Both the position numbers and the translations under genes were made by a program. From Podarcis gaigeae (lineage: Eukaryota), in the NCBI GenBank assembly GCA_964106915.2, contig OZ066914.1: a DNA stretch of 64,000 nt; one strand, written 5' to 3'. Below the pieces are notes generated by a model that was not told where the DNA came from, did no database searches, and was given only the letters and a program-made list of their open reading frames with translations. Shown piece after piece: positions 2,236-63,938 of this stretch (position 1 is its first letter; each line of letters begins with the position of its first letter).

Positions 2236-5200
2236 TTATTTATACCCTGCCTTTTTTCCTGACATGGACTCAAGGCAGCTTAGGAATTGAGTGAAGTCAT
2301 TCATAGGAATTGAGGAAAAGCCCCTCCCAACGATGTCATTTTTTCTAGAAGTCCTGTCTGTCAACAGAAGGTTCTCCCCCCATCCAAAAAAATACCCAAT
2401 TCCTGAACCACAGAAGAAAATATAGTTTTCTACTAACAAAGCATAACACATTACTGAAAAAATGATCTTTTTTTTTTTACCTTAAAGAGCCGCAGAATTC
2501 TTAAAACACGAATAAACCGAAATATCCTGATAGTATTAATCATATGATACGTTGTACTGAGTGTTTTAAAGAGGTTAATAATCATGACATCTACAACTCC
2601 CACTACTATGATTATCAGATCAAACTGGTTCCAGTGGTAAAAGATGTAGTTCCTCCCCATTGCAAAAGCCTGTTTAAAACAAATATTTAATTGACATCAA
2701 ACATTGTGTGTATTAAGCATTTTACTCCTCAATTTACAGGGCTCTCAAAGCACCTTACATAATAAAAACAATTACTAGTAGTAAGAAGAGGAGCCTCAAA
2801 ACGTTCTGTATTGGGGACTGATGTTTTTAATTGGTTCACAAAAGACATGGAATAAGTCATGATGTGGACAAATTTGCAATACGCCAAATTATTCAGCATA
2901 ATGAAACCCCCAAAGAACTTACAAGGGCTTCAAAAAAATTTCTCCAAACAAGGTGAATGAAAACCAGTACCAGTACCAGTTACTGGTGGGAAGCAACAAT
3001 TGGAGAGCCTAGTATCTTCAGGCCCTGCACAAGTTCACAAGGTTGGCCACTGTGGGAAACAGGATGGTAGACTTCTCGTCTCACCTAGCACTGATGTGCT
3101 CTCCACATTAATGTACGGTATTCACTGCCACAGGATTTTGAGATGGCCACAACCTTAGACCACCTTAAAAGGGGATTAAATAAATTCATGGAGAATAGGT
3201 CTACGATTAACCTTTATGTACTTCTCTAAATTGCTGTAGAGGCAACAGCAGAGGAAAGTTATTCCTAAGTCTTCAAACATAAAGCATAGACACAACACAA
3301 TTCTATAAACCTAACCAAATAGAATTAATGGGGAGGGTGTGAGCTCCACTGACTGCAATAATGTTCACAGGCAGCTTTGCACACAACTCGAGTGTATGGG
3401 AAAAGGGACTGTCAATATGGAGATCTCCTCATACACAGACATCTCTGATCTTGCAGGAGGTGATCAAGAGAGGAGCGGGATCAACTCTCAGTCAACACAA
3501 CTATAGTTGTTTCTTTTAAGCCACAGCAAGAATCAGAACATTAACTGAAGAAAAAGAATGAGCAGGGTGTGATATTTCCAAGAAACAAGAGTTTCAATTT
3601 CACACTTTTGGTCAAGTAAATTCAAATTCCATATTGTAAAAATGTAAGTTAATAATGATTATATGTCCACTGGAAGGACAGATCGTGAAGCTGGGGCTCC
3701 AATACTTTGGCCACCTCATGAGAAGAGAAGACTCCCTGGAAAAGACCCTGATGTTGGGAAAGATGGAGGGCACAAGGAGAAGGGGACGACAGAGGACAAG
3801 ATGGTTGGACAGTGTTATCGAAGCTACAAGCATGAGTCTGACCAAACTGTGGGACGCAGTGGAAGACAGAAGTGCCTTGCGTGCTCTGGTCCATGGGGTC
3901 ACAAAGAGTCGGACACGACTAAACAACTAAACAACAACAACAAAGTCAATAATTAAAAATACAGTTAATACAAATATTGCAATACTTTGAATAGCCAGTA
4001 CCTTAAATAATGCTTCCATTATATACAAAGCCAGATAATAGTAGTTGCACACTTTTAGTTCTATAATAAATGTTGAAGAATACTTTGGTATAAAGTGAAG
4101 AACGATAGGGACACAGTTCAAAAATGTCATCATGGTACTTATATATTCAAATTCATCCATGAATACCATATGGTGGCACATTCTTAAAAGCTTGTTTCTG
4201 GGGAGGGAGGAGAATAAAATTTTGAGCTTTGATTAGTTACCAAAACATTTAGAAAATTCTGACCACTACATTATATTTACTTGTTCATACCATACATGGG
4301 TAATTAGATTATTTAAAAATGTATGATAAGACCCATAGACAGGCAGGAATCTAGCAACAACTAGAGTCTTGTGAAGCTAAATGAGAAGAATGAAAAAGTG
4401 TGCAAAAGAGTCCTGCTCCTCTTCCTTTCCTAAAACTGGACACCCCTCCCCATTGGAAATGGGGGATTTCCCAACAGAACTATACATAATTGTATGGGCT
4501 GTTTGAGACACTCACTCACTTCTCAAACAAGGGGGGATCCAGAGGTATCAGAGGAAGAACAGTACAACAACACACTTGTATTCCTTTCTTTCTTGCCAAC
4601 ACTCACCTTGCTCCAAAGAAACGTGATGCTGGCAAAGCCAAAAGTAGAATTCTGCTTCCAAAGTTCTACCCATCACTGTCATCAATGTCTCCTCAGCCTC
4701 AGCCCCCTTTCCCTGACTAAAGAGTAGGGGGAGTCAGCGGAGAATGCTGACAGCTCCTATGCTCAGAACTGGGCCAGAACACTGGCTGGAAAGAAGACTC
4801 AATTGAGCTCTATACTGATCTCCACCTGCACACACAGGGATATGAACCACTGTCAAGAGAAATCTAGACTCAGGGCTCCCAGCACTCAGCCATGCCGCCC
4901 CCACCTCCCGAGCCTAACCTCCTGTGCAACTACGGCTGCATTCCTGCAACCTGAACTGTGCATCCAAAGGTATCTATCAGGGTTACAATATAAGCACCAC
5001 CATCAGACTTTAGCACTCCCTTGCCTTATAAAATCCAAGCTTCAGAGCTTGCTCTTCACTTTGAATAATGTGCCTCTCTGGGCAGGATCATGTCTGGAGA
5101 AGCCAACTCCTCCCTTCCCCACACAGCTGACTTTCGCACTGATTATTTGCAAGCCTTAGCTCTCTGATCTTACTTGCTGATTTTGGAACTTGCTATTACT

Positions 5201-43506: not shown

Positions 43507-43706
43507 NNNNNNNNNNNNNNNNNNNNNNNNNNNNNNNNNNNNNNNNNNNNNNNNNNNNNNNNNNNNNNNNNNNNNNNNNNNNNNNNNNNNNNNNNNNNNN
43601 NNNNNNNNNNNNNNNNNNNNNNNNNNNNNNNNNNNNNNNNNNNNNNNNNNNNNNNNNNNNNNNNNNNNNNNNNNNNNNNNNNNNNNNNNNNNNNNNNNNN
43701 NNNNNN
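43507..43706. other. Assembly gap (200 N)
   Basis: Run of N; the round length suggests a placeholder of unknown true size. Confidence 0.99.
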
Positions 43707-44194: not shown

Positions 44195-44275
44195 ATGCAG
44201 AGGTGTACCTGTCTCCTGTTTGCCTCCTTGATCTTCTGCGCTGCCGTCTCAGAGACTTTCGGGCTGGTGTTATCC
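44195..44275 (+). CDS. GAL: GAL exon 2, signal peptide MQRCTCLLFASLIFCAAVSETFGLVLS
   Basis: ctcctttcag|ATG acceptor, TCC|gtgagt donor, 81 nt; resembles the sauropsid GAL signal peptide. Confidence 0.93.
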
Positions 44276-47200
44276 GTGAGTATTGTCGCTTTCTGCTTTC
44301 TACACTACTCTCCGTCTACAATAATCATGTGTAAGTGGTGAAGGGTGGGTGGGGGACAAATTTCACGGTAAATTTCAGAAGCCTGCTCTTGGATCAATGC
44401 AAGAGAAAGTGTGTTCACACGGTCGTTTTTTCCTCCAGTATTGATACAGTATAGCCACTCATTTATTCCGGAGTACCCAAACAGCCTTCTTACAAAGGAG
44501 GGCATCCCTGTTTTCTCCCCAGTGTCATCCTGAAGTTTTTGAGTGATGGTGGTGTGTAGTGATTTTTTGGAGTTTCCATCACAATTATATAGTGCAGTCC
44601 TTTCAGGTATGATGGATTGATGGAATTCTGTTGTCTGGCATGAAAGTGTGCTTTGGGAATGTAGCAAAGCCCCTCTGCATTTCTTGGTCACCTCTCCACA
44701 GTTGCCAGTTCTAAAATGTCATCCCTCTGCAGTGGTTTTCCTACAGTGGTGGAACAAATTTCCCTCCCCATTTCTGGGGCAGGAAGGAAAGTGGGGGAAT
44801 AACAATTGTATTTTCCAAGAGTTGATCTTTTCCAGCTGGAGAGAAGCAAGTGATTTGTTGAAGAGCACAGGAATCCCAGAGAAAGTGGTGTAAATCTTTT
44901 GAAACAGTTTAACAGCAAGGAGAATGTGAGTTGCTTCTTACTGAGACATTAATGTCAAGCTGGTTGCAGTCCCAAGTTTACTTTTCTGGAAGGAAATTCT
45001 TTTGAAATTGATGAAGCCAACTCCAGAGTAACCTGAGAGTACAAAGTATGAGGGATGAAACCCTGTAACAAATCATTTACTTTACTTATTTTTTATTTTA
45101 TTTTAGCTATATAGTAATTTATCCTTTAAATTCAATTATACTATTCAAACAACACTATAAATATTATATAGTTATATATGGTAGATTACACTTACATTCA
45201 AGAAAACAGGTTTAAATATATATTATGAAACATGATCAATGTGTGATTTCCTTGGCTGGTATTTCTGTATTTTAAAAGAAAAATTGTGTGGCAGTAATAA
45301 GTGAAAAAATAATAATCTCACAATTTTTCTTTCTGCAAGGCTAAAGAGAAAAGGGGATGGACTGTGAATAGTGCTGGTTATCTGCTTGGTCCAAGTAAGT
45401 CCAAATGTTTTATATTACTTGAAGACAATCTGGAATAACAGAAAAGTAACATCCCGAGGTTTCTAAAGCTCATCACATACTATACATGAGCATACATGCA
45501 ATATCCCATACTAACTCTCATTCACAGCTTGTGGCGGGTGACAGCACTAAATCACTCAGTTAGTGCTCTCTCTGGTGTTTATTGTAACCTATTTACAGTG
45601 GAGTGCTTTGCAGGAATTATGACTCTTATCACTGCGCTTGAATCATGAGAGTAAACCAATTTTATCTGAAAGCTCATCTTTCAGTTCCGAAGCCATGCCA
45701 TTTACAGATAATATTAAATATACATACTAGTATCTCTGAATGTGGTTATCAACTTTCCTGGAATAAATATGCCAAACTAATACTATGCTGGAAAACTGTA
45801 TCTTTTCTGCTTTGGAGTCCACATCTTTTTACTTTCCTTTGCTTACTGTTGTTGAGAAGATGATGTATTTTGGACTGTCTACAAACAACTGAGGCCCAGT
45901 CCAGCAAAGTTAATGAAAGGGCATCTGCTTTGCATGCTGAAGGTTCTGCATGCTGATGTCGCCAGCTAGGACTGGGAGAGAGCCCTGCCTGATCTCCTGA
46001 TAAGTTGCAGCTAGCTATTGTAGACTATACTGAGCAAGAGGGGCTAATAATCAGACAGACTCAATATTAAGCGGCTCCCTATGTTCCTAAATCCCACTGA
46101 GTGTACTCGAATAGGACTTTACCTAGATTGTGCCCATGATAAGTGCTTTATGTAGATACTATACTTCAGCTTAGGGAAATAATTTTGTTATCCATGAACA
46201 GGTAATTTTGGTAGAGAAGAGGGTAAAGCGATTGAAGTGGTTAGGTGTCGGGGGGACAAAATTCACAGTAAGGTTCAAAAGTCTTTTACTTGGATAAATG
46301 CAAGAGAAAGGGTGTTCCCATGGTTGCTTTTTCCTCCAGTATTGATTCAGTTTGCTCACTCATTCCTGAGAATCCAGGCAGCCTTCTTCCAAATGACATC
46401 TCTCTTTCCTCGCATCATGAAGTTTTAAAGTGCTGGTTTGTAGTGATTTTTTTTTTAAAAAAACCTTTTTATTAAGTTTCCCATTTTAACAATCCAATCG
46501 AATCACATTGAATGTTCCAGATTACACAAATACATATCAAATAGTCCAAATATTCTGCCTAAATTATATATTTTTTGCCTAAATTATTTTTTTTTTGTTG
46601 AGACTTCCCATGCTTCAAGTTTGGGGAGGCTCTTGTTTGTAGTGATTTTTGTTTATCACCCTTTCCTTTAGTGTACAAGCAATTATCAGCTAAGCTTCTT
46701 TTAAAGCCAAATTTCTTTGTGCAGATTTACGTTAAGATAAACTGTTTCAATATCAAAATGATTTACCTTAAATCCATGTTGTGCTGCAATAGCTAGCAAT
46801 AAACATACACTTTCACTCCTTGCAGTAGGAGAAAAGGTTTCATCAAACTTTCACCTTTTCTTTGCGTAAAGCCTCGTGCTACCAGCCTAGCTTTGTACTT
46901 AACACTACCATCTGCCAAGTGTTTTATTTTATACACCCATCTACAGTACACTGTCTTTTTTCCTTCTGGCAATGGCTCAATAGTAAACACATTATGTTCT
47001 GCCAAAGATTTCATTTCTGCCCTCATTGCATTTCCCCACATTACTATTTCCTGGTGTGGTAACTTTAAAACCTCCTTATAATCACGAGGTTCTTTCTTCA
47101 CATCAACAGTTTTAACTTCTTGTATAGTAAACCTTTCTGGAGGTACCCCCTTATTGCTTCTTTGTGATCTTCAAACTTGAACACTTTCCCCCTCTGAACT

Positions 47201-50200
47201 ATCTTCCCCTTCTAATTCATCTTGCTCAGGAGAAATTGGTTCAGCTTTAGGAGATTGTGTACTGGGACCCTCATCCCCTGATTCCTCATCACTATCACTT
47301 TCAGAACTTTTTTTAATTTGTGGCTTTTCTTCCTCAGATTTCACAAATTTATCTGTATCATCTGAAAATAAAACAACTTCTGAATTTCCATGTAAACGAG
47401 CCCAACCATCTTACTCATAAAACTCTGCATGTCTTGATATTACAACTCTGCCAAGCCCTAGTGCAAAACGATACACTTTTGACCAGCTTTGATAACCAAC
47501 AAATCTAAGTCTCTTTGCCTTGGGAACTCCTTTCCTTCTCTGTCCTTTTGGGATGTGAACCCAAGCCCAACAACCAAAAGTTTTAACATGGTCCAAAAAA
47601 GGTTTTTTTCCATAAAGCAAAAAAATGAGGGGTATTGTTTATGGTAAAATGAAACAATCTGTTCTGTATGTAATTAGCACAGAGAATTGCTTCCCCCCAA
47701 AACTTCCTGGATAAGCCAGAATTACATAACATAGAATCTAGCATTGTTTGTAAAGACCTTATCTTGCGTCCTGCAGCTGAATTTTCTTCGGGTGAAAAAG
47801 GACACTATTTATGGTGACTAATACCACATTTTTTTCAACCATATATGGAGGGCTTCAGACATGAACTCGCCTCCACGGTCACTCTGCAATTGGGTAACTT
47901 TGTAGGGAAACTGCCTTTCTATATAGTTGACCCAATTTTTAATCAGTTGACCAGTTTCACTTTTGTGTTTTAACAAGTATACCGGCTATAATCACCCACA
48001 AGAACCAGAAAAAACATTGCTCCTCCTTCAGATTCTGCAAATGGCTCACAAAGGTCTGGATGTAATAAAGCAAATGGCTTCTTGCTAATTCAGGATAAGA
48101 TCCCCACTTACTTTTAGACTACTTGCAGGTATTGCAGTCCAGAAAAACTGAACATTTTTTTCATTTTAATTCCCTTACTTAATTCTGGCATTTTTGCAAT
48201 GCTGCGGAAATTGGCATGCCCCAAATGACCATGCCACAAATGCTGGCACTCATCATGCAAGGCTCTATTACTGTTGGGGGGGGGGGTTCTTCTGGTGGCA
48301 GACGACAGAACCATGAAAGAACACTCAAACAAAGGTTTTATTACAGCTATACAAAACAACAAACAAAAAGCATGCAAGTGTTCTCTCTCTGCAGGCAAAT
48401 TCAAACTGCAACTTCTCCTCCTTTTGTAGTCATCACCAGCTGTACCTAATCAGCCTAGAAAACCACTCCCAGAACTCACAGAAAAGGTTCTTAAAGTTAC
48501 AGTCATCCTTTCTGTTTATTTGCAGAATGACTCCTAACACTACCAGTAGATCACGATCGACCTGTTGGACATCCCTGGAACAGATCAACTGAAATTAATA
48601 GACCTAACCTAGCTGTGCTCATTAAATTCAGTGGGTCGACTCTAAGTAAAGCTTAACTGAATACAGCCGAAGTTTCTCTTTGTACACACCTGTTAGTAAC
48701 CTCCAGCTGCTTCACTCATAACGGAGCTGTATTTAACTAAGTGACATTTTCAGAATGCAAGCTTCACGCCTTTGCTGCTTATTGGGTGTGTTCAATACAC
48801 CTTTTCACAATTGCCCAATATGTTAGATTATAGCTATCCGTCCGTATGTTGTAGAAATTACTTTCAATGACACAAGAGGGGTGTCTTTACTTACAAGGGG
48901 TAAAGCATAATACAAGAGTTTTAAAAACCGTGCCTAAATACCTCTACTAAGAATGTTTTATTTGTTTGTGTTGGCTTCAGATAAACAGTGACTGAAGAGG
49001 CTGTGCAGACAGCCAAATCTCCATTCCATAGAAAAGAGATCTACTGATCAAAGTTCCGTTTTTTCTAAGGTTGGGTAATAGCCATAATCTGTTTCAGGTC
49101 GTGTTGCTCAGATCCTCAAGAAAATGTCCCGTGCAAAGGGGACAGAAGAGCCACCTGGGGAACGTAAGATGGCTTTTGGAGGTTATTCGTGTAAACTAAC
49201 TGCAGTTTACTGTCAAAGCAAACTAACTGACAACTCGCTACTTAAAATCAAAGGAAGCAACAGTACAACTACATTTTCTTTTGTTTTCTTTTTATAAAAT
49301 TTATTGAACAATTTCCACAAACAAATTTCAAAACAAATAATCAATTACATTGTTCCCCCATATTTTCCTTATTCCCCTCCCTATCCCTCCCTCCCTCCCT
49401 CCCTCCCTCCCTCCCTTCCCCTCCAGAGACTTCCCTCAGCTCCTCTCTCTGATTTGTATACCTATGTTATTCTCTGCATGTTAAAGAATGTACGTATCGT
49501 TACTTAATCTATCATATGTTCATCTACTAAATTTGTGGATGTTTATTCAAAACCTGCCAAGGAGTCCAATTCCTTTTGTTGTTGTTTTAAGTAATTTGTA
49601 AAAAGTTCCCACTCTTCTTTGAAGTCAAAGTTGTCCTTATCACATAATTTATATTTCAATTTAGCCAATTCCGCATAGTTCATCCGTTTTTCTTGCCACT
49701 GTTCCTTCATTGGGGTTTCTTCATTCTTCCATCCTTGTGCTAACAAGGCTCTTGCCGCTGTTGTAGCGTACATAAATAAGTTCTTTGTTTTTCTTGGCAG
49801 GTCTTGTCCTACAATCCCCAACAAAAATGTGTCTGGCTTTTTTACAAATGTAATTTTAAACATTTTTTCCAATTAATTATTTATCATTCCCCCCCCCCCC
49901 AATTAACCTCTCTACATTCCCACCACATATGGTAAAAAGTACCTTTTTCTTTACATTTCCAACATATGTTTGATCCGGTTTTGTACATTTTTGCTATTTG
50001 TACTGGTGTAATATACCATCTGTACATCATTTTCATATAATTTTCTTTCAAAAGAGAACAATCTGTAAATTTCAAATTTACTTTCCACAAATTTTCCCAG
50101 CCCTCAAATTGTATGTTATGTCCTATATCCTGTGCCCATTTAATCATAACTGATTTAACCTCCTAATCTTTTGTCTCCCATTCTAGCAAAATACTATATG

Positions 50201-53200
50201 CTTTCTTCAACAGCTTCACTTCTTCTTCTATAACTTCCTTTTGAAATCTAGAAGTTGTATAACTAAACCCTTTCTTGCTATCTTCCTTATACATCTCACG
50301 TGATTGTCTGTAATGTAACCAACTTTGAAATGTTCTTTAATTTCCTCATAGTCTTTTAATTTCCACTTTCCTTCTTGGTCCCTCAGTAAATCTCTGTATG
50401 TAGGCCACCTCCCCTTTTTGCCAAGCAGTTTGAGTAACAAAGCTTCAATTGGTGATAACCACCAGGGTGTTTTTTTGTTCAATTAAGTCTTTACAGTACA
50501 ACTACATTTTCTAAATTGGACACAATGAGCCCAAGACTGCACCCAGATATGCTCAACTCTTTTAGTCACGGCTTTTCAGGAAAGGACAAACGAGGGCTTT
50601 GAATCAGAGATGGTTCAGGAGATGCCTTTCGAATTCCTTGCTAATGGCTCAGTTCCACATTTGGCTGAAGGGACACATAAAGTCATTGGGACGTGTTATA
50701 CCAGTAGCTGCACCACCACCACATCATCATCTATGACACTGTGGTGGTGCAGTTGTTTGCCAGTGATGCATTGGTTTACAGCTGGTGTGTCTGTTTAAGT
50801 GAAATGCTTCTTTCCATTCATTTGCTGTTCACCATCCCATCATGAAATGTCTTTCACGTTCTTGTTCAAAGCTGAAATCTTTTTACCTGGTGTGGTGACG
50901 TCTATGAATCTCAGGCTACTCTAGTAAGCATTACAGAATGAATGAAACCTCTCTCGTTTGTTAACAGGTGCAATTGACAAAGTTTTTAATGCCCAGCCTG
51001 GTCTAGCTGGTAAACGTGACATACAGCTTGAAGGAAATACAAAAGCAGGTAATGAAATGACCCCCTTCTCATACTTACTGAGGAGTTTATATCCCAGTGA
51101 TATCTGAACAGCTGCCCACCAAACATTCTTGGCACATTTCTAGATTCTAAAGAGAGCCTTTATTCCAAACTTTTACAGGGGGGGTCTGGGCAGGATTTCA
51201 GGAGTCTAGAGGTTTCGGCAGGGCCAGTCAATCAACTGGTGTATGGATTGCATCACCCCTTTTTATTCTTAGTGCATTTGAAAATGAAATATTGCTTTTA
51301 AAAGATACTTTAAACTAGAGGAAAAGCTTCTTTCCACTGGAAACTGAGTGCCGCTGATTACAGAAGCTGGTTAACATAAGTAGACCTATAACCAACATTG
51401 TCTCATCAGCCTGAGAGAAAAAACAAACCCTTTATATCCTAATGTATATTATATTACTGCCAATATGTATCCCCTTCCCCACCTTAATTATTTTAAATGA
51501 ACAGCAAATTTAGTAATACCTAACTAATATTTTCTAGGTATTTTGGGAAGACCACTGACTGATGACAATGTTTTGCGTATGGTAATTGATTTTTTGACAT
51601 ACTTACACCTTAAAGGTTAGTAAACCTGTTTTCACTTCAAACCGTTTTGTAATATGAAAATTAACATAATCCTTACAGAGGATTGTAACCCATATTCCAT
51701 GAGCAGCATTCCACTCAAGCAACAGGATTCCCCCCTTTCCTTGTGTGCACCCCAGATCTGCTCCAAAGGCCCCACCCCACCCCAAGAATTTGCAGAAAAT
51801 ATTTGCAGAAAAACGTAAAGAAAATATTTAGGGGCAAAACCAAAGGGGAAAAAAGCTCCCAAAACTGACCAATGAGGAACTGGGTGTAAACAGAACACTA
51901 GGAGAGGGGGACGGAGTAACCTGGAAGAGACACACCTGGCTGGCTTTTGGACGTTCAGGCAGTCATTACGGCCGGGAATGCCTTTGCTTAAGTTTGGTTG
52001 GTGTACCAAATGCATCCTTTCCTGGAAAAGGCAGATCTGGCTACTGCTGGTTATTACCCACATGGCTTTGCATGGACATTTGAAACTGTCCACTCACTTC
52101 TTCTTCCATGTGCTGCCACTGGCAGAGGTGAGAACATGAGTAGAGCCCTGCATGATCAGGCCAAAGGCTCATCCTCTTCCCAGATGCCTATGGGAAGCCT
52201 GCTAGCAGGACCTGAGTCTCCCTCTTCTGATTCAGAGCAATTCGTATTCAGAGGTGTGCTGCTTCTGACAGTGGAGGTAGGACATAGCCAATAGCCCACT
52301 GACAGCTTTATCCTCCATGAATTGTCTATTCCTCTTTAAAGCCATCCAAGTTTCTCTCACTTCACCTGGTGAGAGAAAATTTTGCAGCTCAACTATGCAC
52401 TGTGTGAAGAGGTACAGTGGTACCTCAGTTCTCAAATGTAATCCATTCCGGAAGACCGTTCGAGTTCCGAAACATTTGGAAACCAAGGCACAAAGGGCTG
52501 TCTGCAGATTCAGTTGAGAAAACTGAAAAACACGCAGTGGAAGCCGTTTGACCTCCGAGGCGCATTAGGAAACGGAAGCATCCACTCCGTGTTTTTGACG
52601 TGCAGGTTCTGAAACTTTCATCAACGGAGACGTTCAAGAACTGAGGTACCACTGTAGTTTCTTCTGTCTATCCTACCTCTTCCAACTTTCAGCTTCATTA
52701 CATGGCCCTGAGTTCTAGTATTATGAGGGAGAAAAACTTCTCCCTGCCTTATTTCTCCACATCATGCCTAATCTTATACATCTCGGTCATGTGCCCCCTT
52801 TCTAGCTGTTTCTCTAAACCAGAAAAGGCCCAAATGTTGTAACCTTTCCTCATGGGGGCGTTGCTCCATCCCATGGATCTTCCTGGTTTGGTTGGACGTG
52901 GAACAAGGCCTTCTTTTTGGAGCGTTCTAACTCTGGAACAAATAAAGCTGTTGTTTCTTACACACACTTTCTCAATGCTGAATGGCTTCTTAATTATTAC
53001 AGGAAAATTGCAGGTGAAATAAATGGGGTTTTGCATCTTTCCAGAATTTCTTTCAGCTTTTAGGCAGTGTGATTTTTTCCCCCTACAAAGGGAGCCATAT
53101 AGGTAGAAAATTATTCGTACAAGGAGAGAATAATAACAGCAAGATGAAAGGCAGGCACTGTAATTGCAAATCGGATGGTAGTGCTTCTGTCAATGAAGGG

Positions 53201-53794
53201 ACCTTTGAGTCAAAGCCACACAATGCTTTCTCGATAAGGGAAGAAAAGCACATTCATTGACAGGTGAAAATGTTCAAGGATGACCAGCCTCATGCAACAG
53301 TGCAAGAAGAGAAGCATATTTAGAATTTGCCACGTATTTAAGCAAGGGAAGCTGTGGTCCTCCAGGTGTTGTTAGACTACAACTCCGCTCAGTTCCAGCC
53401 ACCTAGGTCAATATGATGGAAGCAACACTTTGAAAACCAAAGGTTAGCTGCCTCTATGTTAGAACATAGGTTTCCCATCACTGATTTGAACCCCAACACA
53501 TGCCTATATCAAAATTACATCCATACATAATTACAAACAGTAGAATGAAACCATAAGAAAGGAATGGCGTATTGTTTTTATTTCTTTTCGGAGACGTTAA
53601 GTGAGTTCAAGTGCCTTGCCTTGTATCATAATTGCTTTGGAAGTGAACTGTAGTTTTATAGATTTGTCTCCAAGCACTTACTGTTTCCTGTCTTTCACAA
53701 GCATACACTTTTAATTTTTATTTATTTTTCAGAAGCTGGGGTTCTTGATGACATACCTGCAACACTTTCTTCAGAAGAAACAAATCAGTCTTGA
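44195..53794 (+). CDS. GAL: Preprogalanin (galanin + GMAP), 118 aa; 140 aa with cassette exon
   Basis: Exons 44195-44275, 45340-45394, [49098-49163], 50968-51048, 51538-51615, 53733-53794 join in frame: MQRCTCLLFASLIFCAAVSETFGLVLS AKEKR GWTVNSAGYLLGPSAIDKVFNAQPGLA GKR DIQLEGNTKAGILGRPLTDDNVLRMVIDFLTYLHLKEAGVLDDIPATLSSEETNQS*. Confidence 0.95.
45340..45394 (+). CDS. GAL: GAL exon 3, AKEKR-GWTVNSAGYLLGP
   Basis: Galanin N-terminal signature after the KR site; 55 nt; A|gtaagt donor. Confidence 0.96.
46452..46634 (-). mobile_element. Short poly(A)-tailed retroposon 3' end (probably L1)
   Basis: 16-bp TSD GTTTGTAGTGATTTTT (46436-46451 and 46635-46650), with AATAAA and an A-run on the minus strand. 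Confidence 0.65.
46660..48450 (-). mobile_element. Ty1/Copia LTR retrotransposon pol remnant (pre-integrase, integrase, RT start)
   Basis: LWHGHLGHANF, QLQSDRGGEF, KTFGCWAWVHIP, CRWVYKIK...YKARLVARGFTQ; integrase-before-RT order is diagnostic of Copia; frameshifted. Confidence 0.9.
49098..49163 (+). CDS. GAL: GAL alternative cassette exon ((S)RVAQILKKMSRAKGTEEPPGE(R))
   Basis: ctgtttcag acceptor, C|gtaaga donor, 66 nt, phase 1/1, no stop. Confidence 0.75.
49280..50492 (-). mobile_element. 5'-truncated L1-clade LINE in a GAL intron
   Basis: ORF2 C-terminus with CCHC knuckle (CWKCKEKGTFYHMWWEC), A-rich tail, 20-bp TSD ACAGTACAACTACATTTTCT (49260-49279 and 50493-50512). Confidence 0.88.
50968..51048 (+). 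CDS. GAL: GAL exon 4, SAIDKVFNAQPGLA-GKR-DIQLEGNTKA
   Basis: Amidation/cleavage site GKR; 81 nt; AG/GT. Confidence 0.92.
51538..51615 (+). CDS. GAL: GAL exon 5, GMAP core GILGRPLTDDNVLRMVIDFLTYLHLK
   Basis: GMAP signature .N..R..I.FL.YLHLKE; 78 nt. Confidence 0.95.
52120..52880 (-). mobile_element. Degenerate CR1 LINE 3' fragment, interrupted by a MITE
   Basis: GLEKQLERGHMTEMYKIRHDVEK and ALKRNRQFMEDK resemble the CR1 ORF2 end. Confidence 0.65.
52415..52654. mobile_element. Tc1/mariner MITE inside CR1
   Basis: TIR CAGTGGTACCTCAGTTCT, TA TSD. Confidence 0.82.
53733..53794 (+). CDS. GAL: GAL exon 6 coding part, EAGVLDDIPATLSSEETNQS-stop
   Basis: ttatttttcag acceptor; TGA at 53792-53794. Confidence 0.93.
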
Positions 53795-56003: not shown

Positions 56004-56564
56004 GCTGTTGTTGTTTAGTCCTTTAGTCGTGTCTGACTCTTTGTGACCCCATGGACCAGAGCACCCCAGGCACTCCTGTCTTCCACTGCCTCCTGCAGTT
56101 TGGTCAAACTCACGTTGGTAGCTTCGAGAACATTATCCAACCATCTCGTCCTCTGTCATCCCCTTCTCCTTCTGCCCTCCATCTTTCCCAACATCAGGGT
56201 CTTTTCCAGGGAGTCTTCTCTTTTCATGAGGTGGCCAAAGTATTGGAGTCTCAGCTTCACGATCTGTCCTTCCAGTGAGCATTTAAGAATGGATAGGTTT
56301 GATCTTCTTGCAGTCCATGGGACTCTCAAGAGTCTCCTCCAGCACCATAATTCAAAAGCATCAATTCTTCGGCGATCAGCCTTCTTTATGGTCCGGCTCT
56401 CACTTCCATACATCACTACTGGGAAAACCATAGCTTTAACTATACAGACCTTTGTTGGCAAGCTGATTCTCTGCTTTTTAAGATGCTGTCTAGGTTTGCC
56501 ATTGCTTTTCTCCCAAGAAGCAGGCGTCTTTTAATTTTGTGATTGCTGTCACCATCAGCAGTGA
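56004..56564 (-). mobile_element. BovB/RTE LINE 3' fragment
   Basis: KAMVFPVVMYG...RRIDAFELWCWRRLLRVPWTARRSN; 11-bp TSD TCCTTAGCAAT (55993-56003 and 56565-56575). Confidence 0.92.
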
Positions 56565-61034: not shown

Positions 61035-61606
61035 TCCATGATCACAGCAGATGGTGACAGCAGCCACGAAATTAAAAGACGCCTGCTTCTTGAGAGAAAA
61101 GCAATGACAAACCTAGACAGCATCTTAAAAAGCAGAGACATCACCTTACCAACAAAGGTCCATATAGTTAAAGCTATGGTTTTCCCAGTAGTGATGTATG
61201 GAGTGAGAGCTGGACCATAAAGAAGGCTTTTCGCCAAAGAATTGATGCTTTTGAATTATGGTGCGGGAGGAGACTCTTGAGAGTCCCATGGACTGCAAGA
61301 AGATCAAACCTCTCCATTCTGAAGGAAATCAGCCCCGAGTGCTCACAGGAAGGACAGATCGTGAAGCTGAGGCTCCAGTACTTTGGCCACCTCATGAGAA
61401 GAGAAGACTCCCTGGAAAAGACCCTGATGTTGGGAAAGATGGAGGGCACAAGGAGAAGGGGACAACAGAGGATGAGATGGTTGGATAGTGTTCTCGAAGC
61501 TACCAGCATGAGTTTGACCAAACTGCGGGAGGCAGTGGAAGACAGGAGTGCCTGGCGTGCTCTGGTCCATGGGGTCACAAAGAGTCGGACACGACTAAAC
61601 AACTAA
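61035..61606 (+). mobile_element. BovB/RTE LINE 3' fragment
   Basis: ITADGDSSHEIKRRLLL...LVHGVTKSRTRLNN, frameshifted. Confidence 0.92.
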
Positions 61607-62343: not shown

Positions 62344-62541
62344 CAGTCTTGGAAGTCGAACAGAATCCATACCAGAAGTCCATTTGACTTCCGAAACATT
62401 TGAAAACCAAAGTGCGGATTCTGACTAGCTGCAGGAAACTTCCCAAAACCGTTTGAAAACTGGAACACTTACTTTTGGGTTTTGACCGTTTGGAGCCGAT
62501 TTGTTTGGGAGCCATGGTGTTTGAGATCCAAGGCACAACTG
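62344..62541. mobile_element. Tc1/mariner MITE (degenerate)
   Basis: TA|CAGT...ACTG|TA with an internal sequence related to 23855-24094. Confidence 0.65.
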
Positions 62542-62622
62542 TACTTGCAAACGAAGCAAACAATAGAAAGGTGGCTTTATAAAGGGATTGGGGAAATTCA
62601 TGGTATAGTGTTCATTGTATTC

Positions 62623-62765
62623 ACTGGATAGTGTTCTCGAAGCTACCAGCATGAATTTGACCAAACTGTGGAAGGAAGTGGAAGACAGAAGTGCCTGGCG
62701 TGCTCTGGTCCATGGGGTCACGAAGAGTTGGACACGACTAAGCGACTAAACAACAACAACAACAA
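62623..62765 (+). mobile_element. BovB/RTE extreme 3' end
   Basis: Same sequence as the other copies plus (CAA)n tail. Confidence 0.85.
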
Positions 62766-63938
62766 ATTAATGGTGGATAAGGCTTCCCAGGGCTACCTCC
62801 ACTGCAGAGACAGAGCACCAGTGGCTAGGGAACAGGAGGAATGGGGCAGAGGGCTGTTGCCACCATGTTGTCGCTTGCGAGCTTCCCATAGACATCTGAT
62901 TGGCCACTGTAGAAACAGAATGCAGGCCTGGATAGGCCTTTGGTCTGATGCAGCAAGGCTCCTCTCACATTCTTAAAGACACTGTAAGGCTATGCACACA
63001 TAACTGCCTTAAAATGGAGGAAGGCATACCCTCCAGTCACACCCTATATGTTGGAAGGTCTTCGAAGGTCATTGACTGACTGAATGGCCGGGGGTTCACT
63101 GTTCAAATCCCATTCTAATCATTGAAAACTATGCGATCCCAAAAGGGTGGAATGTTTCGTTGAAGCAGCAACGAATTTCCCCAAAAGATTAATATTTGAA
63201 AAGGAGCCTTGACAAATTGTTTCATCTTCTTACAGCAGTGACAGCGCAATCTCTCAATAAAATTCTGGTCTCCCCACAAACAGTTGAGTGTGAAAAGGAG
63301 CTGAAAATGAAATGACTACAATCTAAGTGCAATAAATGTACAGTTTTTGAAGCTAAATTGGAGCCGTCTTCTGTGATCAGAAACAGAATTACTAACTTCT
63401 GAGTGTTTGGGGGAAGAAGGAATTCATCACTTTAACCCAAGAGAAAGTGATAAGTAGGTGAGTGTGCTGTACAGTCCCTGGAGAAGATATATTTGAGGAG
63501 AACACATGAACACAGGCTACTGGTTTTACCTCCTATGTGAGTTGGGTGTATTATTTTTCTGCAGACGAGAAGGTAAATATGAAATGAACAAACATGGATT
63601 GTTTTTATATTTTGCTGCAAGCCGCCCAGTGTGGTTGAGGAAAACCAGCCAGATGGGCAGGGTATAAATAACAAATTTATTATTATTATTATTATTATTA
63701 ACAAAGAATGCCTTCTTATCAACTGATCAGCAGTGGTGTAGCAGAGAAGGGACTTCACAACAGGATTGATGATATCATCTTCCATATCATCTGTCCATTT
63801 TACATTAGGCTAGTCCAGGAATTCCTCTGCAGTTTGTATTTCTTCCTTCATACCCCAAATCAAAATCCTATTATTGATTAATTTATAGGGCTTAGGGGGG
63901 TCCTTCCCAAATCTATAACAATATAGATGGATATATAT

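Follow-up and report, generated by a model that had tools for sequence, protein, structure and literature searches.

A shortened, 27-residue galanin predicted from the GAL gene of the lizard Podarcis gaigeae, with a probable origin on the squamate stem

The first 15 residues of the neuropeptide galanin are treated as near-fixed in vertebrates, and ligand design relies on that. Structures of the receptors GALR1 and GALR2 resolve only residues 1-17 of the bound peptide, and a fragment of residues 1-16 is close to the full-length peptide in binding (PMC9173784). A 2025 paper further describes a long galanin of non-mammalian vertebrates, made by inclusion of an additional exon, 3a, from the intron that separates exons 3 and 4 (PMC12749109). 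Here, we analysed a 64,000-nucleotide stretch of contig OZ066914.1 from the lizard Podarcis gaigeae (hereafter the window), which contains an intact gene for preprogalanin (GAL) whose predicted mature peptide is 27 residues long and departs from the vertebrate consensus within the N-terminal part. We suggest that the locus is the single orthologous Podarcis GAL, that its 27-residue format goes back to the squamate stem, and that it most likely encodes a working galanin whose action on its receptors is broadly conventional; to this combined reading we assign a probability of about 0.75.

An intact GAL gene and its predicted peptide

The window contains the full set of five preprogalanin coding exons on its plus strand; they are open, follow one another in order and in phase, and sum to 118 codons. 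The exon with the start codon and the signal peptide (44195-44275, 27 codons, donor GTGAGT) shares 21-22 of its 27 residues with alligator, turtle, chicken and gecko, at tblastn E values of 1e-8 to 3e-9. Exon 3 (45340-45394, 55 nucleotides (nt), acceptor cag, donor gtaagt) comprises the end of the propeptide, a Lys-Arg (KR) site at 45349-45354 and the codons for the first 13 galanin residues, and it closes with the A that opens codon 14; this stretch matches the Pfam family Galanin (PF01296) at 30.6 bits against a cut-off of 20.5. Exon 4 (50968-51048, 81 nt, acceptor gttaacag, donor gtaatg) supplies the last two bases of codon 14, residues 15-27 (to 51008), the Gly-Lys-Arg (G-KR) site at 51009-51017 and the start of GMAP; exons 3 and 4 both have canonical AG/GT borders. 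The core of GMAP lies on exon 5 (51538-51615), which was identified by tblastn, by exon alignment and by the Pfam family GMAP (PF06540, 38 bits, cut-off 25), while the GMAP C-terminus and the TAA stop lie on the last coding exon (53733-53794), placed by a partial GMAP match and by exon alignment. Exons 4 and 6 gave weaker partial GMAP matches, in the order of the model. Alternative splice sites were considered and rejected: use of the second GT at exon 3 (45399) as donor breaks the frame, and there is no other usable AG that could serve as an acceptor for exon 4.

Read in the spliced frame, exons 3 and 4 encode KR, then 27 residues, and then Gly-Lys-Arg. Codon 14 is composed of the A that ends exon 3 and the GT that opens exon 4, giving AGT (Ser), whereas in Crocodylus the last base of exon 3 is C and the first bases of exon 4 are AT, giving His; H14S hence took one substitution in exon 3 and another, 5.6 kb away, in exon 4. 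Residue 4 is encoded by GTG (Val) at 45364-45366, compared to TTG (Leu) in Crocodylus. In Crocodylus, exon 4 is 6 nt longer (87 versus 81 nt), and the gap in the lizard exon falls directly after the Ala-Ile-Asp codons. The exon reading and the Crocodylus comparison thus agree on a 27-mer between KR and G-KR that carries Val4, Ser14 and a two-residue deletion, as an earlier, sequence-only reading of this DNA had described it. Compared with the human galanin in receptor complexes of the PDB (7wq3), the lizard peptide matches at 12 of its first 13 positions, with residue 4 as the sole difference; Gly1, Trp2, Asn5, Tyr9, Leu10 and Pro13, as read from exon 3, are all present.

The exon reading, the Pfam matches and the alignments also bear out that the processing sites, the amide-donor Gly, the signal peptide and GMAP are intact. 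Upon removal of the signal peptide, cleavage at KR and G-KR, and amidation, the precursor would release a 27-residue galanin. The sequence-only reading had taken the gene to be functional with a peptide off the consensus at otherwise near-fixed positions, and the gene indeed appears intact and functional-looking, with just such a predicted peptide. Assignment to galanin-like peptide (GALP) was considered and rejected: GALP carries the galanin(1-13) motif at residues 9-21 of a 60-residue peptide and has no GMAP, whereas in the lizard gene KR immediately precedes Gly1 and GMAP follows downstream.

As a DNA reference we used the GAL locus of Crocodylus porosus, which was reached via its long isoform (L001). 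Exon phases and borders are the same throughout in the two genes, including the split of the peptide after the first base of codon 14 and the placement of the signal peptide on the preceding exon. Base identities amount to 45/55 in exon 3 (55 nt in both species), 63/81 in exon 4 (81 nt in the lizard, 87 nt in Crocodylus) and 52/66 in the alternative exon 3a described below (66 and 72 nt, respectively). When precursors of crocodile, turtle and gecko were compared with the whole 64 kb by tblastn, one exon 3 and one exon 4 were found, and neither a canonical exon 4 nor a tandem GAL copy was detected in the window.

Placement among vertebrate galanins

Relatives were collected by an exhaustive search of representatives with the 30-residue exon-3 stretch, from which the tortoise preprogalanin P0011 was taken as query; this query returned 345 galanin precursors, and our comparisons rest on the best 120 of these 345. 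From the 90%-identity clusters among these 120, we surveyed 84 short-isoform galanins. Among the matches listed, the mature peptide is 29 residues long in 76/84 and residue 14 is His in 81/84, while residue 4 is Leu in 79/84 and Met in the five others, all of which are geckos. The premise that residues 4 and 14 are nearly invariant was therefore confirmed across the 84 peptides. A 29-mer with Leu4 and His14 is found in tuatara, crocodilians, turtles, birds, amphibians and mammals.

The five geckos, which represent three gekkotan families, have a 27-mer with the same two-residue deletion as the lizard, together with Met4. Their peptides align with lizard exon 4 free of gaps, at 17-19 identical residues out of 26 (19/26 in Eublepharis), whereas a gap of two residues is required by tuatara, alligator, crocodile, turtles, birds, salamander and opossum. 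The last coding exon holds a three-residue insertion that is common to the lizard and the geckos and that crocodilians, turtles and birds do not have. A 27-mer was also listed for the tinamou Nothoprocta (P0082), in which residues at the exon 3/4 junction are missing; this may be a gene-model error.

The divergence between geckos and lacertids is among the deepest within crown squamates. As the 27-mer format and a non-Leu residue 4 occur in both the geckos and Podarcis, both features are most readily assigned to the squamate stem, at a point after tuatara had branched off. On these comparisons, the 27-residue shortening is best regarded as a squamate-stem trait and not as a recent oddity of Podarcis gaigeae, and the loosening of residue 4 probably dates to the same stem. 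The sequence-only reading had presented the shortening to 27 residues and the missing His/Arg-rich stretch as special to this lizard lineage, a view that we abandon, because the five geckos share the deletion and tuatara keeps the 29-mer. We propose the following order of events. On the squamate stem, after the tuatara split, two residues would have been deleted in the variable C-terminal half and the His/Arg-rich stretch replaced; residue 4 would have left Leu within squamates, becoming Met in geckos and Val in Podarcis; and H14S and three C-terminal substitutions would then have arisen on the lineage towards Podarcis.

The squamates compared here are Podarcis gaigeae and the five geckos. Measured against these geckos and the outgroups, five changes, Val4, H14S, D22A, K23Q and H24P, have so far been seen on the Podarcis side alone, which also has Lys in place of Arg at residue 18. 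We assessed the relative rate by three-taxon counts that were made exon by exon and then summed. The mature peptide showed 3-5 Podarcis-only versus 0-1 gecko-only changes (binomial p 0.06-0.4), and the remainder of the precursor, where the pace matches that of geckos, showed 6-8 Podarcis-only versus 3-11 gecko-only changes. The whole precursor is not fast-evolving relative to geckos, and the extra change in the Podarcis mature peptide provides a hint only, with no significant acceleration. Of the rapid lineage-specific evolution that had been put forward for this ligand, the private substitutions are thus present, but their excess is not significant and the deletion is common to geckos. All of the best 120 of 345 matches score at least 124 bits, and no non-gecko squamate is among the matches listed, which suggests that non-gecko squamate galanins are at least as diverged as that of Podarcis and that no canonical copy is annotated there.

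Receptor contacts and competing explanations

In the GALR2 complex, galanin was modelled over its first 16 residues, with His14, Ala15 and Val16 fully exposed and without contacts, and binding is carried by Trp2, Asn5, Tyr9 and Leu10 (PMC9371267). Leu4, Pro13 and Val16 make hydrophobic contacts with extracellular loop 2, in which GALR1 and GALR2 differ (PMC9173784). Since residue 14 and the residues beyond 17 are off the receptor, little effect on binding is expected from the deletion, from H14S or from the changes at residues 22-24. With Val4, as with the Met4 of geckos, a hydrophobic side chain would be kept against extracellular loop 2, and the central binding residues Gly1, Trp2, Asn5, Tyr9, Leu10 and Pro13 are unchanged. 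By analogy with these complexes, the combination of off-interface changes and conserved binding residues makes it most likely that the lizard 27-mer is functional as a galanin and acts on its receptors in a broadly conventional way. The shift in GALR1/2/3 selectivity that the sequence-only reading had contemplated is not favoured, while a subtle shift in the preference for GALR1 versus GALR2 via residue 4 is possible.

Some points weigh against the reading of a single orthologous, conventionally acting squamate galanin. The splicing, the expression and the base accuracy of GAL are inferred from sequence. No conserved flanking gene was recognised among the open reading frames of the window, and the Crocodylus GAL locus has no neighbour gene within 10 kb. 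Furthermore, with geckos as the other squamates compared, the private changes may belong to Podarcis alone, to lacertids in general or to every squamate outside the geckos. Lastly, Leu4 is a receptor contact that is otherwise invariant outside squamates, making some pharmacological shift possible.

The alternative that survives best, although we consider it unlikely, is that positive selection in this lizard lineage drove a rapid evolution of the ligand, accompanied by a change in GALR1/2/3 selectivity or by co-evolution of the receptors. Such a history would fit the position of Val4 at the contact with extracellular loop 2, where GALR1 and GALR2 differ, the 3-5 private substitutions in 27 residues as opposed to 0-1 in geckos, and the two base changes that H14S took. 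Yet the excess of substitutions is not significant, four of the five private changes lie away from the receptor contact, the replacement of Leu by Val is conservative, and the largest change, the deletion, is squamate-wide. We regard as doubtful, too, a broader re-tuning of the squamate galanin system, in which Leu4 would have been freed (to Met or Val) along with changes in the GALR1/2 loops, the 27-mer would differ in receptor bias or stability, and the long isoform of Podarcis would be processed differently, owing to the loss of Arg-Arg after Pro13 and the gain of Lys-Lys.

Far less probable is that the odd codons are assembly or sequencing errors, or that the gene is decaying under relaxed constraint. 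A gap of 200 N does lie 0.5 kb upstream of the start codon, but two substitutions, in exons 5.6 kb from each other, are required for Ser14, the deletion preserves the frame and is also found in geckos, and no damage is seen in the reading frames, the splice sites, the dibasic sites, the amide-donor Gly or GMAP. Least credible is the sequence-only suggestion of a diverged second GAL copy, with a canonical GAL elsewhere in the genome: some turtles do list 'galanin peptides' and 'galanin peptides-like' on one contig, but the sole listed GAL of geckos is of the same 27-mer type, no canonical squamate 29-mer occurs in the best 120 of 345 matches, where it would have ranked, the window has one exon set, and the exon structure and exon 3a fit the crocodile orthologue. 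The turtle pairs, which occur on one chromosome-size contig each in Chrysemys (P0020/P0023) and Emys (P0025/P0043), may represent a GAL duplicate or an annotation split.

The long isoform, the surrounding DNA and comparison with known galanins

Upon scanning intron 3 for in-phase open AG...GT exons, we obtained a candidate for the alternative exon 3a at 49098-49163 on the plus strand (66 nt, with phase 1 at both ends, acceptor ctgtttcag and donor gtaaga). The same interval is the best match in the window of crocodile and turtle exon-3a peptides (tblastn E 0.005), with 12/21 residues identical in the peptide alignment. A second product, a long isoform through exon 3a, is likely from the sequence. 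Like the exon of the long isoform GAL53 (PMC12749109), the lizard exon has the same position and phase, and it shares 79% nucleotide identity with crocodile over 66 nt; it differs in having 22 codons, compared to 24 in crocodile. With A as the final base of lizard exon 3, Pro13 would be followed in the long form by Ser-Arg, in place of the Arg-Arg of crocodile, turtle and quail; moreover, the lizard insert contains an internal Lys-Lys pair, and the residue following the insert is Arg, not Tyr. That these dibasic changes alter processing is speculation.

Intron 3 of the lizard gene is several times longer than that of crocodile, partly because of the insertion of a decayed Ty1/copia-type retroelement (46796-48404, minus strand), which gave a Pfam RVT_2 match of 41.5 bits at 46796-47101 and a sub-threshold gag_pre-integrase match of 22.5 bits (cut-off 28.4) at 48117-48404. 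Upstream of the gene, the 200-N assembly gap spans 43507-43706, ~0.5 kb from the GAL start codon, and is adjoined by a G+C-rich stretch at 43.7-44.0 kb that probably contains the promoter and the non-coding exon 1. Spexin-2 has been reported near GAL in the anole (PMC9174643); none of the frames of the 64-kb window contains a spexin-like motif. Further from the gene, one interspersed repeat is present in four copies (3612-3956, 56043-56534, 61174-61606 and 62425-62976) with long overlapping open reading frames on both strands, whose translations are alike between copies; two of these frames that were sampled had no Pfam match.

In the literature searched, we found no paper carrying the N-terminal galanin motif of either geckos or Podarcis, and none linking galanin with squamates in substance. 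The squamate 27-mer is apparently undescribed in that literature, although it is already present in databases as automatic predictions. An order of reptiles in which the peptide is shortened and residue 4 varies offers a natural experiment on the positions that galanin receptors tolerate. It is also relevant to work on lizard physiology that uses mammalian galanin and antibodies, an example of which is a Podarcis thyroid galanin study to which PMC12692533 refers. With most of the changes off the receptor interface, the effect is likely to be modest.

Shortened galanins are known from other vertebrates. The 24-mer of the pipefish Nerophis ophidion (P0014) and the 28-mer of Xenopus tropicalis (P0116) resemble the lizard peptide in a loss from the C-terminal half, with the N-terminal 13 residues and the processing sites kept, but they retain both Leu4 and His14 and represent independent events in unrelated lineages. 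The canonical 29-mers, as in tuatara (P0129), Alligator (P0047), Crocodylus (L001/P0107) and chicken (P0029), agree with the lizard in gene structure, in exon phases, in both processing sites (KR and G-KR), in the GMAP domain and in residues 1-3, 5-13 and 15, while they differ from it by two additional residues, by Leu4 and His14, and by the His/Arg-rich stretch after residue 17. The RefSeq predictions for the geckos Eublepharis (P0121), Heteronotia (P0139), Paroedura (P0136), Sphaerodactylus (P0138) and Euleptes (P0140) share with Podarcis a 118-residue precursor, a 27-mer with the same gap, a non-Leu residue 4, the Gly-Lys-Arg end and the insertion in the GMAP tail. They are distinguished from it by Met4, His14 and Asp22-Lys23-His/Tyr24, where the lizard has Val4, Ser14 and Ala22-Gln23-Pro24, and by Arg at residue 18, which is Lys in the lizard.

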